Assembly: GCF_000143415.4 (NCBI RefSeq)
Contig: NW_003314410.1
Coordinates: forward strand, 1-64,000
From: Selaginella moellendorffii
Lineage: Eukaryota > Plantae > Lycopodiophyta
DNA length: 64,000 nt
Direction of reading: 5' to 3'
Shown here: positions 25,545 through 33,239 of the stretch, one piece after another
How the letters are laid out: the number at the start of each line of letters is the position of its first letter
How positions within the stretch are numbered: the first letter of the stretch is position 1
Notes under the pieces: generated by a model
What the model was told of the DNA's origin: nothing
Databases searched by the model: none
The model's input: the letters and a program-made list of their open reading frames with translations, nothing else
Made by a program: the position numbers and the translations under genes

Positions 25545-28500
25545 ATGGGAAACGAGTACCATCAATCGTATCAGCAAGGCGCTGTACACAACTCCTCGAA
25601 GGCCAAGTCACAGTTTCAAAGGCAGCCGCAGCAGAGAGTGGGAGCTCCGGATCCTCTACTCAGAGAGTTGTCCGCTCTAAGTCGGGCGCCATCGCTGAGG
25701 GATCCGTCTACGAGCTCCGTTTGGAAGTCGGGCTTGCCTCCTCAACATAACAGCACCAACAATAGGCTAGACAAGGAGCTCCCTGCTCGTCTTCGTGGAC
25801 GAGAAGCCAAGCTTGCGAAAGCGGCAGCAAGTTTTCAAGGGGAAAGTGTGGATCAAGATGGCTACGGAGAGGAGGAGATTGAGCAGGATCAACTTAGAAC
25901 GGAATGGCAGGACAAAGTCGTCAACTGGATAGATGGTGGTCTTCGGGAAGGTGAGCGAAAGCAGGCGCTTCTTCGGAGCATCAGCGAGATACTGAATCAA
26001 AAGATGGATGCTCCGGATAGTAGCTCCAGCGCCAACACAAAGCTGCGGAAAATTGGATCCCTGGAGCACCAGAGGCCTCCGCAAAACTTGAGAAGGAACA
26101 GGCACCAGAAGGAAGGTGGCAGCAGAAGAGGCGGAAGAATTGCGTGGAGGGAGCAAGAGGAGGAAGGGTATGAACTGGAGAAAGCATTGGCCGTGACAAG
26201 GCACGAAGCGGATCCAGGCTACGATTACGAGGAGTCCGACAGTTCTTCCGACGACGAAACAGACGGCTTAGTTTCTCACTTGCACTCTCCGTTACTTGCC
26301 ATGCAGAAAGAGCGGAGGGTGAGACGCCATAGAAAGCTAGCGACGGGGGACCTCGGATGTGCAAACTTTGGCTTTTCTATGGGTTCCCATCCATACAAGA
26401 AGTTCCTGCCACGAAAGGGCCATGAAGCCGATGCTTACGACGGGACTGAAGGCAGTCACGGGTGCGGCCTCCCATGGTCTTACTGGCCAAGGCACAAAGG
26501 AAAGAACCTCCTCGAAGTAGCCGGGAAAAGTCTCTCCTGCTATCCGGACATTCCAAGGAGGAAGATCACGGGTCAAGAGATGATCCCGGCTCCTGGGAAC
26601 ATACCGGTTTCTGCAAACACAGATAGTGCTGCTGCTATCTCGAACCTGTCACTTTTGGCTGGTAGTTTGGAGACGGATTTGGACAGGCTCTCGAATGGGA
26701 AAAGGCACAGGAGCTTGAGCCAGAAGTACCGTCCCAAGACCTTCAGGGATATAGTTGGACAGAACATGTTGGTGCAAGCTCTTGGCAATGCCGTGACCAG
26801 GGGGAGGATAGCACCGGTATATTTGTTCCATGGGCCTCGTGGAACTGGAAAGACTTCGGCTGCTAAAATCTTGGCGGCGGCATTGAACTGCGTCTCTGTG
26901 GAAGATACTCGGCCCTGTGGAGTCTGCAGAGAGTGCTTGCTTCTCTGCCTGGGGAAAAGCGGAGACGTGAAAGAAGTGGACGTTGCAAGTCACGACTCAA
27001 CAAGTCTAATGAAGAAGCTGCTAATGGACGCTGTGGTTGGGCCGTCATCAGGTCGTTACAAAGTTTTCATCATTGACGAGTGCCACACACTCACAGCAGA
27101 GGGGTGGAACGTGTTTCTGAAATGCCTCGAAGAACCCCCAGAGCACGCGGTTTTCATTCTCACCACGACTGACACGGAGCAGTTGCCACATCCGGCGTCA
27201 ACAAGGTGTCAAAAGTTCCATTTTCCCAAGATCAAGGACTCGGACGTGGTGAGCAGGTTGCAGGCTCTCGCTGCAAAGGAAAGCTTGGAGGTGGAGAAAG
27301 ATGCGCTCGACCTCATCGCGGCAAGGTCTGGTGGTTCGCTCAGGGATGCTGAAACAACACTGGATCAACTTAGTCTCGTGGGACAGAAGATCACTCTAGA
27401 AGTGGTGCAAGAGCTTGTATGTTTCAGGGGTTAGTGTGCTGTGGTTTCTAGTTTATTCTTAGAGATTTTTTCTAGATCATGACTAACATTGTACGAATTT
27501 TTTTCAGGTTGGGCTGGTGTCCAATGCAAAGCTGGCGGATTTGCTGGACATGGCTCTTACTGGGGACACACTGAACACTGTCAAGTGCATTAGAGAGTTC
27601 ATGGACGCAGGTGTTGAGCCACTAGCTCTCATGTCCCAGATCGCCACCCTGATAACGGACATCCTAGCAGGTGGATACATGCCAGCAAGCGACAAGGGAT
27701 TTTTTCATAAGCACGCATGTGAGTATTATCTTGAGTTTTTTCAAACAGTTTCTAAACAAATTTGAACTTTATGTCGTCAGTGTCTAAAGATCAGCTGGAG
27801 AAGCTGCGACATGCTCTCAAAACGCTGTCGGAATCTGAGAAGCAAATACGATCTTCTCAAGATCAGACAACATGGCTGACGGCCGCTTTACTACAGTTTG
27901 CTCCTGATCCTCACTCTGGATTTCCTGGGTCCTCTGGTAGAACAAGCAATACACCCAGCATATTAGCAGCTAATGACACGAGCGAGAAGGAGACAATAGA
28001 GTGGGAACCTCCGCTAACAAAAGAGTCCTGGGATGACGTAGAACATCAGCACCAAGCTGTTCTCTCTGGACACCTGAATTCCCTTCAGATTGACGCAGAG
28101 AACAACTTAAAGCACCAAGCTGTTCTCTCTGGACACCTGAATTCCCTTCAGGTTGACGCTGAGAACAACTTAAATGGTCAGGACACCACAGCACAACAAC
28201 CATCGGCACTTGGAGAAGGTTGGAACTTTGAGTGGTAGAATTTCTTTGTTTCCTACGTGTTCTTCCATGCGCAGGTGACAGGGTTGCGCTCGAGCGTCAG
28301 CAAAAGCTACTGGACACTTGGATACGGGTTCTGGAAGTCAGCCAGTCCAGCATTCTCAAGCAGCTTCTTTGGAACCACAGTAGACTGTCGTCAATATCAA
28401 TTGAAGGAGGTAAATGACCGTTGAAATGCTTTCTCCTCTTCACAAAATGGTTTACTCAGGTCGTGCAGTAGCACATTTGGAATTTCTACAGGCTGACCAC

Positions 28501-29205
28501 AGAACAAGCGCCGAGAGGTCAAAAACCAGCATATCTCACGCGTTTCAACTAGTTCTCGGCTTTCCGGTAGAGATTCGCCTCCACCTCTCTGGAGACGAAG
28601 ATACCAAGTCCAAAAGCCACGAGCAGAAACTCTTGCCCGTTTCAGCGGAGTTCAAAGTTCCGGCCTCGCCTGCAAAGTCATCCGTACCGCAAGCCGAGTA
28701 TCTCAACTCTCGGTCATTTCCCGTCTTCATCGGGAACGTCAAGCGCGAGGGCGACGAGTTCCCGAAAGGCTCGTGGGACTTTGAAGACTTTTCGCACAGA
28801 AAGTCTGGCAGCTCCGAGAACCACTCGGAGAACGATGGCACCAAAGGTTGGGGACTGCGTCAACAAGGCAGACAAATGCTCCAGATTCAAGGCAGACGGT
28901 TCAAGCTTAAGACGGTGCGAAACTTTAGCACGGATCTTTGCTCGGAAGCGGGGCAGCACGTCGAGTCCAAGAACCAGTTGAGTAGTGATTATCTTTTGCT
29001 ACTACTAGTGTTAACAGTTAGTTTTTCTTGTCCTTCCAGGAAACCAAGTGCTCGGCAAAAGCAAGGTGCCAGTCTACTCTGCTGGAAGACAAACAAAGTG
29101 GATGAAGACGACGAAGAAGTAAGAAGCGATTTGGTACGAATGCAAAGGTTCTAAGTTATCTTCTCTCATTCTCAGGAAGCAGAGCAAGAGGCCGCGCGAC
29201 CATAA
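25545..29205 (+). CDS. STI: STICHEL-like protein (DNA polymerase III gamma/tau-like AAA+ domain), ~7 exons
   Basis: SLRDP motif, GCGLPWSYW, RSLSQKYRPKTF.DIVGQ, Walker A GPRGTGKT, VFIIDECH, GSLRDAE. Confidence 0.9.
28048..28173 (+). repeat. In-frame 63-bp tandem duplication in an STI exon
   Basis: HQAVLSGHLNSLQ(I/V)DAENNL occurs twice. Confidence 0.95.
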
Positions 29206-29522
29206 GTTACGAGTAGGTAAGCAAATGAATAGTATAATATCAATGGTGTTATTCGCCAGGAAAGTATGAGCACGACTGTGTTTATTTACTCGGAGATGGC
29301 AACAAAACTATTGAGAGAAGTAAGGTTATAGAAACATCGTAGACTAGGAACTAGAAGATAGCTACGGACGTACGTTAGGCACTGTTTGTTTAGCAGGAAC
29401 TCGAGAGAGACTAATACATAACGATGATGTTGCAGCGTCCTCTGATCAAAGAATTGAGTCACACAAACAAAGCACGGCCAGATCCCAGCGCTCTCTTTTA
29501 CTTGGGAAGGCTTTATAGACGT

Positions 29523-30154
29523 CTAGCGCCCCACAATGACATAGACGGCGTAGATGATCCCAGGGATGTAGCCGAAGACCGTGAGCAGCAGGCAAATCCA
29601 GAACTCGATCTGCCACGGAAGAGATTCCAGGCGGGCCGGAGACGAAACAAACAGAAGAAACAAAACCACCATCAACATCAGGCCAGAAACAAAGACAATC
29701 TAAAAGTCTACAGCGTTTATTTCACAGCTCTTGGAAACAAGAGTGGCGGTGGAAGAAAGAGAGTGGAGTGACTCTCAGCGGACGAGAGGCTCACGCCCGA
29801 AGCTACGACGCCTGCAAAGTATGACATAGACTGCGAAGGCGATCCCCGGCAAGTAACCGAGAACCGTGAAGAGCAGGCAGATCCAAAACTCGACCTGGTC
29901 GGAAACGGGAAGAAAAAGTGAGGCGGGATCATGACGATGAGAGTCAACAAAGCAGAGCACGTCCCTCTAATCTACTTTACTTTCCTCTAAGTGGCTACAG
30001 AGAAAAGCAAACGCAGAAAAAAAAAGGGCTGAGAAAAGAGTGGGAAAGTTTTTGGCGAGCCTACCTCACATCCATACTTGAAGAAAACCCCCACTGGCGG
30101 GAGAAGAATCGCCAGGAGGATTTCCAGGCATGTCGCCGTGGTGCTATCGTCCAT
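29523..30154 (-). CDS. RCI2: RCI2/PMP3 small membrane protein A, short isoform (exon 30065-30154 + exon 29523-29609, 58 aa)
   Basis: MDDSTTATCLEILLAILLPPVGVFFKYGCE / IEFWICLLLTVFGYIPGIIYAVYVIVGR*; phase-0 GT-AG. Confidence 0.75.
29775..30154 (-). CDS. RCI2: RCI2/PMP3 protein A, tailed isoform (exon 30065-30154 + exon 29775-29894, 69 aa)
   Basis: Same first exon / VEFWICLLFTVLGYLPGIAFAVYVILCRRRSFGREPLVR*; AATAAA downstream. Confidence 0.8.
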
Positions 30155-30603
30155 GCCGCTGCCGCCGCCGCCGCCGCCGCGAGAAATCTCTTCTGCTACA
30201 CAACGAGAACGATCCAAATCGATCGCCGAGCTCGCAATTAGAATGTACCTCTTGTAGCGCCGAGATCGCCCCGCCCCGCCTCGCCAAGATAGAAACCCTA
30301 AGCTCCACAATGCAAAAACACACACTAAAAACAGCTAGCTAGCAATGCCACGTGGCGGGCTGGCTGGCTGAAAACGCAGGTGTACCAAATGGATAGATTC
30401 CTCGAAGTAAAATCACCACAACATTTTTTACTCTACGCGAGAAAAAATTCCACCATTATGGTAGCATCCAATTTAACAAGAGCTTATTAGGCGTTGCTAC
30501 CTTCGTAACTGTTTTTTTTTCTCCCCCCTATTTTTTCCGTTTCGTTCGCTTCCAATCCAGGCTAAGTATCTACAGCGACGAGGGAGCACCACAACGAAGT
30601 CAC

Positions 30604-30865
30604 TTATCCAACCAGCACGTAGATTGCGTAGATGATCCCCGGGATGTAGCCGAGAATTGTGAGCAGCAGACATATCCAGAACTCAATCTGAGAGAAAACC
30701 ACAAACCACCGAATTAGCTCCAGCTTTGGAACGCATTCAAGCGGAAACGACTTCGAAAGAGCAAGAGAAAGATCAAAAACTCACCGCGCAGCCGAATCTT
30801 AGGAAAACCCCCAGCGGAGGGAGGATGATGGCCAGCAAAACATCGATGAAAGTGGCGCCAGCCAT
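30604..30865 (-). CDS. RCI2: RCI2/PMP3 protein B (exons 30785-30865, 30604-30687; 54 aa)
   Basis: MAGATFIDVLLAIILPPLGVFLRFGCA / IEFWICLLLTILGYIPGIIYAIYVLVG*; TATA-like sequence ~30965-30974 and ABRE CACGTGTC ~31062 upstream. Confidence 0.92.
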
Positions 30866-31435
30866 TTCGATCGCCTGCGACTCCCACTTAGAATCAAAGC
30901 TGCGATGGATAGAGATGAGCCAGGAAACAAGAAAAGCACAACACTTGCCTCTGCTTCCCACGAATTATATAAAAGGCGACACGGCAGCTAACACGCGGCA
31001 GAGGATGGCACTGGACACGCTTCCAGCTGGCGCGATCGCGTCTGTCGAGCAACGACTGGCCCACGTGTCACAACCATAGCAACAGGCATCGTACTCCAAA
31101 AATAAAAAAGAGGCCGAAAAACAGCAAAAAAAAAAAAAATGTTGAGAGAGACATACCGGCCGAACGAAAATCTCCCGTGGATATGGATGATGGATATACG
31201 CATCGCTAATGGCACCTGCAATCCAGCATTCACTAGCGAGTGAATAGCTCCAGACAAAAGAGAGAGAGCCAAGCTGAAGCTATCGACGAGAATTGCAATG
31301 TACCGTGTTGGCTCGCGACCAGAAAACCGAGGAGCGGCAGTAGAACACGACACTTTTAAAGTTGCGAGAGTTGGAGCTCCCGACTCGATGTTCCGGAGCT
31401 ACTGCATGGGCTGTGCGTGCCGAACTAGAGCGGAC

Positions 31436-32949
31436 ATGGACTTGGACGCGAGATCCACGCGCTCGGCGCTACAATTCCCGTCTGTGCGAGAGGCTGTTAG
31501 CAACTATGGCGAGAAAGTGGTGGAAAAAGCACCGAAACCAAACGTGGTGGAGGTGAGTTACCTTCTTGTTCCTTTTTCTTCTGACTCGTTCAACCTTGTT
31601 AGAAACTGGCTGCGGTGGAGCAGGAGCTGAAAACTGCCAAGAACGAGATTGCGAAACTTAAAACCGAGTTAGCTTTGTCAGAAGAAAAATGGTTACAGGC
31701 AGTCAAGGAAGGTAACGAGACTAAGAAGATGGCGAGTGAGATGGCGAATGAAATGGCAAATAAGCTCGATGCAGCCATGATCGCAGTACAGGTTTGTGAT
31801 AGCGCTAGAGTCGAGGCTCAGAAGCACAGCGAAATGGTGACCCAAGCAGCACAGACAGCACGCTCAGCTTTGAAGGAGGAAGCAGAAATGATGAAGACTG
31901 AGCATCGAAAGCAAACCGAAGAACTCCAGGCGGAGGTTGCAAAAGTTGAGAAGCTCGTCACAGACCTGACGGGAAGCGAGAACATCGCTGAAGGGCTGGC
32001 TAAACTGCAGCAGCTGGCGTTTGATACGATGCAAGAGCTTGCCGGCGCGAATGATTTGTTGGATAGCCTGGCGCGAGAGCTAGAAGAGTCGAGGAGGGAA
32101 CTGCACAGGTTAATGGACACGGGAGATGAGATGGAAATGATCAGATCTACAAAGAGGACGTTAGAGCTGGCCAACACTGACTATAAATCTCTATTTGGAG
32201 AGGTAGCAAGGCTTAAGCTGAAAAGCCTTACCTTGAGAGGCGAACTGGCAGAAGCACAAGAGGTTGTGAAGGCCACAACAGCGGAGCTGAACGAGGTAAG
32301 GCTCCAGCAATCCGGCCTGGTCGATGAACATGCAAAAGAAACAGCAGAGTTAGCGAGCAAGCTCAGCGCCCTCAAAGAAAGAGAGAAGCTGCTCCAGGAA
32401 GAACACTCAAAGTTGAAGGACGCTTTGATGCATGCAAACACTGAAGCAGATGAACTGAAGGCCGCTCTGATAGCGGAGAAAGAAAAAGCCAGAGTAGAAG
32501 GCGAGCAACTCAAATCCAGTATGGAGAACAACGCAGATAAGCTCAGTTCTATAGAGCAGCTCTTCATTGATTTTAAGAAGTCACTGGACGTGAAAGAATC
32601 GTCAGCAAACCGAAAGATAACAGCAGCGCTTAGCGAGGCCAGCGCCGCCAGGATTCGAGAACAACACATGATGATCAGGCTAGACGCACTGAGGGAGGAG
32701 CTGGACGAAGCCAAGATGGCAGCAAACAGAGCATCTAGGAAAGCGGAGACCACGGAAGCTGAGAAGCTGATCATAGAGAGCGAGCTGAAGAGGTGGAGAA
32801 AAGCATCCAAGCTTCTCAGTGACCGGAGCACTAACAGCAAACACCACCGAAGAACAGCACTGGACGAAGAAGAGTCGCCAGAGTCGGAGCTTGAACAGAG
32901 CAAGAGTATACTGGGAACATACCTCTCCAGGAAGAAAGCATCACGCTAA
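31436..32949 (+). CDS. WEB1/PMI2-family coiled-coil protein, 2 exons; start could be 31388
   Basis: N-terminal FPSVREAVSNYGEK (WEB F.SV.EAV..FG motif), long coiled coil, C-terminal AE.AE.EK...ESELKRWR. Confidence 0.75.
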
Positions 32950-33239
32950 GCTTTGGCCTTGCTTGCATCCCTGCACAAAGAGTAAAAAGGAACTTTTAAA
33001 TCATAAACTAGTGAACATTACCACTCGACTAGAACATAGGAGAGCACCAAATCTATTCTGGAAGTGCTCCTCTCCAAGCTCTTCCAAGCCAAAAGCTGAG
33101 AGCATATCCTATAGGCAGGCTTCATAGTCAGTCTACAAAAGAAACTCTGCCACTCAATATAAACAGACTAATCGTCCTCCCCCTCAAAGAATGCCAGAAA
33201 ATCTTACGTCCAGCCGACCTTGCGAGGAGATTGTCTCCG

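Follow-up and report, generated by a model that had tools for sequence, protein, structure and literature searches.

An RCI2/PMP3 gene of Selaginella moellendorffii with one first exon and two anciently duplicated terminal exons

Introduction

Can a single RCI2 gene supply both a tail-less and a tailed protein? Among the RCI2 proteins of Arabidopsis, AtRCI2A, AtRCI2B, AtRCI2C and AtRCI2H form a tail-less class, while AtRCI2D to AtRCI2G carry a hydrophilic C-terminal tail (PMC7835403). What the C-terminal tail does in RCI2/PMP3 proteins is still under question: yeast pmp3 mutants are not complemented by the tailed RCI2 proteins of Arabidopsis and camelina until the tail has been taken off, and in the yeast SNA proteins sorting is directed by tails (PMC7835403).

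The question is raised by a small RCI2 cluster of the lycophyte Selaginella moellendorffii, located on the minus strand of a 64,000-nt stretch of DNA (contig NW_003314410.1, positions 1 to 64,000; hereafter the window, in whose positions all coordinates are given unless stated otherwise). The initial annotation, which was made from the sequence by itself, described one first exon followed by two last exons, one with a basic tail and one without, and proposed that both protein classes come from one gene by alternative splicing and polyadenylation, possibly switched by stress. It set this arrangement against the normal one, in which tailed and tail-less RCI2 proteins are encoded by separate genes, and such is indeed the case in the described families.

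Results

Two RCI2 genes adjoin each other in the cluster. Gene A (30604..30865) is a complete two-exon, tail-less RCI2 paralogue of 54 aa, in which exon 1 (A1, 30865-30785; 27 aa) encodes the first transmembrane segment of Pmp3 (TM1) and exon 2 (A2, 30687-30604; 27 aa and a stop) encodes the second (TM2). Gene B begins with the common first exon B1 (30065..30154), which comprises the ATG, 30 codons and TM1 and ends at a GT donor (30064-30063). Two exons encoding TM2 follow. The proximal one, B2 (29775..29894; 39 codons and a stop), lies outside the annotated coding sequence, continues past TM2 into a tail and is separated from B1 by a T-rich intron of 170 nt (29895..30064; 36% T). The distal one, C2 (29523..29609; 28 codons and a stop), is tail-less and is the annotated last exon. 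Between B2 and C2 lies a spacer of 165 nt (29610..29774) with an intron-like composition (39% T). Each of the two acceptors consists of a pyrimidine-rich tract ending in CAG and matches the B1 donor in phase 0, so that the products would be proteins of 69 aa (30 + 39, B1+B2) and 58 aa (30 + 28, B1+C2). One upstream donor therefore faces two acceptor-led exons, each with its own stop, which is the layout of alternative last exons. The initial annotation counted two first and three second exons, and both its count (A1 and B1 for TM1; A2, B2 and C2 for TM2, all on the minus strand) and its coordinates were right; the polypyrimidine-CAG acceptors, phase, intact frames and stops that it described for B2 and C2 were confirmed from the sequence, and the sizes of its basic-tailed and tail-less products agree by codon count.

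A candidate proximal poly(A) signal, AATAAA (29716..29721, minus strand), is located in the spacer 54 nt past the B2 stop, and a candidate distal one (29281..29286, minus strand) 237 nt past the C2 stop. The proximal signal is a consensus hexamer match only, for which the chance of occurrence on that strand within 165 nt is roughly 0.04-0.06. The earlier observation that the gap contains an AATAAA and no TM1-coding exon was reproduced (hexamer at 29721-29716; six-frame scan). In the B2 form the spacer would serve as 3' UTR, and in the C2 form it would make up the end of the 455-nt intron.

All five exons, scanned singly, exceed the curated cut-off of the Pfam Pmp3 family (PF01679; 22.9 bits), with scores of 33.1 bits for B1, 33.6 for B2, 41.0 for C2, 30.2 for A1 and 40.5 for A2. 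Both first exons span positions 2-22 of the profile and the three second exons positions 25-49, and the annotated B1+C2 protein reaches 79.3 bits over positions 2-49. The three predicted products (54, 58 and 69 aa) are small two-helix proteins, and a phase-0 intron separates their TM1 and TM2 sequences. When the 64 kb was scanned in six frames by tblastn and for motifs, no Pmp3 exon emerged beyond these two TM1 and three TM2 exons; neither B2 nor C2 has a TM1 partner available other than B1. The spacer gave no alignment above shuffled controls with either exon 1, either intron or either 5' flank, and comparison of the three copies in their introns and flanks likewise gave no homology above such controls.

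The tail of B2 extends for 13 codons beyond the point where A2 and C2 stop and is basic, with five Arg and one Glu. It is a hydrophilic C-terminal extension past TM2, as in the tailed (group II) proteins. No similarity to it was found in the tails among 150 family representatives, and the B2 tail is therefore of the same type as other tails and not demonstrably homologous to them. A possible birth of the tail by frameshift was considered and set aside, since aligning the 3' ends of the three copies at the DNA level was uninformative.

Seen from the B1 donor, the B2 acceptor is the nearest, across an intron of 170 nt compared with 455 nt to C2, and it is strong, at least equal to the acceptor of C2. 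Of the two exons, B2 is also the better-looking partner for this donor. In a short-intron genome, nearness of the acceptor to the donor counts. On reading the sequence 3' of B2 we found no convincing GT donor, which makes a form with all three exons unlikely. With a stop in each exon and no convincing donor after B2, the pair is best described as alternative terminal exons, or else as alternative 3' splice sites. The earlier designation, mutually exclusive homologous exons, does not apply in the strict sense, given that each exon carries a stop and that no common downstream exon is rejoined.

An RNA stem that would loop out B2 was also considered. A 12-nt inverted repeat (29935-29946 and 29769-29780; 11 of 12 positions complementary) runs around B2 from the likely branch-point region to the stop codon, and it pairs in the local MFE fold (z = -1.1). 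A fold of 476 nt no longer contains the pairing, and chance alone would supply about 0.5 such repeats; the repeat was therefore rejected as evidence.

Upstream of gene B, the ABRE reported at 30347 proved to be a palindromic G-box/ABRE-like decamer (30347..30356, minus strand; core 30348-30355), which lies ~195 nt upstream of the B1 ATG. The motif CCACGTGG occurs three times in the window, as against 0.45 occurrences expected. The hexamer CACGTG is present upstream of both genes, at 30349-30354 for gene B and 31062-31067 for gene A, in both cases ~195-200 nt upstream of the ATG, and is found only 13 times in the 64 kb. Based on this scarcity and on the matching distance, we suggest that CACGTG is probably a promoter element shared by the two RCI2 paralogues and kept since the gene duplication.

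A second copy of the locus (L001, GL377569.1:2284635-2291266) is 97.2% identical to window 28048-33160, from which we conclude that the window represents the other, second haplotype of the same S. moellendorffii locus. The L001 annotation lists a 54-aa Pmp3 protein for gene A, and gene B there covers 632 nt, as it does here. The annotated 58-aa protein of gene B (P0001; EFJ05789.1/SELMODRAFT_136629 and RefSeq XP_024524426.1, 'low temperature-induced protein lt101.2-like') corresponds to B1 followed by C2, residue for residue. This exact match means that both pipelines (GenBank/JGI and RefSeq) skip B2, which falls inside the 455-nt intron. The tail-less form is thus already annotated, while the B2-containing form is absent from databases.

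The two haplotypes are identical in B1 (0 differences in 90 nt) and in B2 (0 in 120 nt). Two differences were found in C2, both at third positions and synonymous, and none that is non-synonymous. The B1-B2 intron has accumulated two SNPs and one indel and the spacer five SNPs and one indel, and the B2 acceptor, the proximal AATAAA and the G-box element are the same in both haplotypes. Non-coding parts of the cluster carry 3.6% SNPs and 0.7% indel events, the indels at the locus thus amounting to about one fifth of the SNP rate. B2, together with 58 nt of its acceptor region, makes up a difference-free run of 193 nt (29760-29952). Under a Poisson model 5.1 changes would be expected in B2, where none was seen (P = 0.006); as an empirical control, about 10% of the 120-nt non-coding windows at the locus are also free of differences (p ~0.1).

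Further differences between the haplotypes lie outside gene B. The only amino-acid polymorphism across the five RCI2 exons is in gene A, where the first codon of exon 2 (window 30687) encodes Ile here and Val in L001. A neighbouring STICHEL-like gene (Pfam DnaA_N-like_STI) contains an in-frame tandem repeat of 63 nt (21 codons), which is present in two copies here (28048-28174) and in three copies in L001 (4975-5164 of that sequence), and is thus a coding copy-number polymorphism. On the other side of the cluster, upstream of gene A and divergent from it, lies an open frame of 444 codons (31615-32949, plus strand) with a coiled coil and a weak match to WEMBL (weak chloroplast movement under blue light); in L001 this frame is part of an annotated gene of 533 aa.

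The exon copies are old. Synonymous distances (dS) between them range from 0.76 to 1.05, near saturation, and among the three TM2 copies such saturated distances leave the order of duplication unresolved. B2 and C2 differ from each other with a pairwise dN/dS of 0.26 at a dS of 0.76; the high dS indicates that their duplication is old, and B2 is still without a stop or frameshift. Gene B is therefore a duplicated-terminal-exon gene, with one TM1 exon and two diverged, tandem, anciently duplicated TM2 terminal exons. On the C2 lineage one non-synonymous change was reconstructed against four synonymous ones (pN/pS 0.06, p = 0.003), demonstrating strong long-term purifying selection, the strongest of the three copies; A2 is likewise under purifying selection. 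That C2 is really used is the point on which all the available evidence agrees, namely its annotation, the selection acting on it and the silent nature of its haplotype changes.

The use of B2 is less certain. B2 may be a pseudo-exon, the decaying relic of an old duplication inside the B1+C2 intron, which is spliced never or as noise, and we consider this possible but less likely than not. Its lineage shows nine non-synonymous changes against three synonymous ones, a pN/pS of 0.59 that fits neutrality (p = 0.41), and it is the most derived copy, every plant representative being closer to C2 or to A2. Such a rate is compatible with a relic; however, the 26-codon core of B2 has undergone 15% lineage-specific change and contains no stop and no frameshift, despite the indels that occur at the locus, and its Pmp3 score remains well above the family cut-off. 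The lack of a homologue for the tail and the omission of the exon by both annotation pipelines would also be expected of a relic, and orphan copies of exon 2 do arise by partial duplication, as in Salix dunnii (L003, see below). A relic does not, on the other hand, readily account for a strong proximal acceptor followed by a well-placed AATAAA, nor for the complete identity of B2 and its acceptor between the haplotypes. Taken together, these features make constraint on B2 only suggestive, and we favour the reading in which B2 is used as a terminal exon.

The search for products bears on the same choice. No B2-containing protein was present in a collection of 5.8 billion proteins, which was searched in length windows of 33-105, 34-107 and 62-196 aa. 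Contiguous protein word queries were made from B1 with its flanks, from B2 with its upstream intron and from the 112-aa 5'-extended frame of B1, and the annotated 58-aa protein was the only one to be returned. For this protein RefSeq lists no second isoform, and its name bears no isoform label. An exact look-up of the annotated protein yielded the genome scaffold only and no RNA-derived contig. Single-exon 33-mers from the 3' end of B1 and the 5' end of B2 were absent from metagenome contigs (the B1 33-mer matches the window). No match was obtained for an antisense ORF that spans C2 together with the gap, such as would be carried by a B2 transcript retaining that stretch, or for B1 read through into the intron, a query meant to pick up genomic or unspliced contigs as a positive control. 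Since the annotated isoform, too, is without an RNA contig, no conclusion on expression follows from the missing B2 form. The proposal that both classes come from one gene is therefore upheld in part: B1 is the sole TM1 partner of both exons and its junction with C2 is annotated, but no database protein contains B2.

We also weighed the reverse assignment, in which B1+B2 is the real gene, C2 is the orphan last exon of a third tandem gene and the B1+C2 model is a homology-driven artefact. B2 has the acceptor nearest to B1, and C2 is more similar to A2 (85% amino-acid identity) than to B2 (71%). The dN values could be read in the same way, as A1-B1 (0.26) resembles A2-B2 (0.24) and not A2-C2 (0.08), but selection is strongest in the very exon that would be orphaned, and the haplotype differences in that exon are only synonymous. 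A third gene should moreover have had an exon 1 and a promoter, of which no trace was detected in the 165-nt gap, and two independent pipelines picked C2. In a set of 105 RCI2 representatives from plants, proteins whose first half resembles B1 tend to have a second half of the C2 and not of the A2 type (rho 0.28, p = 0.004), and no link of B1-like first halves with B2-like second halves was found in this set. The pairing weakly favours B1+C2 as the original gene, with B2 as a later, faster-evolving internal duplicate. We therefore regard an orphan C2 as quite improbable. A profile-free search of 1.84 billion representatives found no other lycophyte locus, and returned only angiosperm-like relatives with at most 80% identity.

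That C2 is translated by itself from an ATG at 29678, as a separate mini-gene with an unspliced ORF of 51 aa, is scarcely credible: the ATG-initiated frame (29678-29523) is open, has a hydrophobic start and is intact in both haplotypes, but its in-frame pyrimidine tract yields Phe, Leu, Ser and Val by default, its 23-codon extension has no match to the Pmp3 TM1 profile and, with two non-synonymous haplotype differences against none in C2, behaves as intron and not as coding sequence, and 165 nt leaves no room for a promoter.

Discussion

Our favoured explanation is that gene B uses both of its terminal exons, and the features of the locus make it fairly probable that both mRNAs, B1-B2 and B1-C2, are made. 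We propose that one promoter and one TM1 exon serve two competing terminal exons. Joining of the B1 donor to the C2 acceptor, with B2 skipped as part of the 455-nt intron, would give the canonical 58-aa tail-less proteolipid, while joining of the same donor to the B2 acceptor would give an mRNA whose 69-aa product ends in a short basic tail, probably on the cytosolic side. The latter mRNA could be cleaved near the proximal AAUAAA or end further on, in which case C2 would be kept as 3' UTR. By analogy with other RCI2 and SNA proteins, a tail facing the cytosol could alter the activity or the sorting of the protein.

A regulated functional switch between the two forms is a separate claim, and we hold it to be much less probable than the use of both exons. 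In its most specific form, a single RCI2 gene would switch between the tail-less protein and a basic-tailed one that differs from it in activity or targeting, under cold, salt or ABA, driven from the G-box promoter and decided by competition between acceptors and poly(A) sites, a scenario that we judge unlikely.

Should both forms come from one promoter, the locus would be a natural experiment on the role of the tail, and it would provide a compact model for terminal-exon choice in a plant with short introns. If the switch were also true, one gene would do the work that seed plants split between tailed and tail-less genes. If, conversely, B2 is unused, what is left is a plain annotated gene whose intron harbours a fossil exon.

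Alternative terminal exons and isoforms derived from duplication are well known in general. The classic case of a skipped terminal exon, in which intronic polyadenylation competes with splicing, is the IgM heavy chain with its secreted and membrane forms. As in IgM, a single donor is followed by a proximal terminal exon that has a stop and an AAUAAA and is embedded in the intron preceding the distal exon, and only the C-terminus of the protein would change; the gene described here differs in that its terminal exons are homologous duplicates and in that use of the proximal one is inferred. The birth of alternative exons by tandem exon duplication is likewise a general phenomenon, and, as in such cases, the diverged tandem copies in gene B agree in phase and have one upstream partner in common. 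Classic mutually exclusive exons, in contrast, occupy internal positions and are spliced on to one shared downstream exon, whereas the RCI2 pair is terminal and each member has its own stop.

Within the RCI2 family, two other gene models combine TM1 with two TM2 copies, those of Salix dunnii (KAF9669795.1) and Tetracentron sinense (KAF8393012.1). Judged from their genomic sequences, both look like annotation artefacts. In S. dunnii (L003 5448-5650, CM027671.1) the additional segment is a copy of exon 2 with a six-codon stub of exon 1, at 100% amino-acid identity, and in T. sinense (L002, CM026565.1) the model fuses two complete tandem genes that lie 10 kb apart. The former copy is thus recent and the latter model a chimera, and neither is an old diverged pair separated by 165 nt, as in Selaginella. 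Isoform X2 of wheat LTI6A was considered as a further parallel and rejected, because the gene spans only 338 nt and therefore has no duplicated exon.

A report of alternative last exons in an RCI2 gene, or of one gene giving rise to both a tailed and a tail-less form, was not found in the literature, and the RCI2 review makes no mention of splicing, exons or introns (PMC7835403). In other respects the locus agrees with the plant RCI2/PMP3 (LTI6, PF01679) families: the protein is the same two-TM proteolipid, the gene has the same two-exon TM1/TM2 layout, gene A is an ordinary member, and the same two protein classes, tail-less and tailed, would be encoded. In the described families, however, these classes are separate genes, whereas here one first exon is the only available partner for both last exons.
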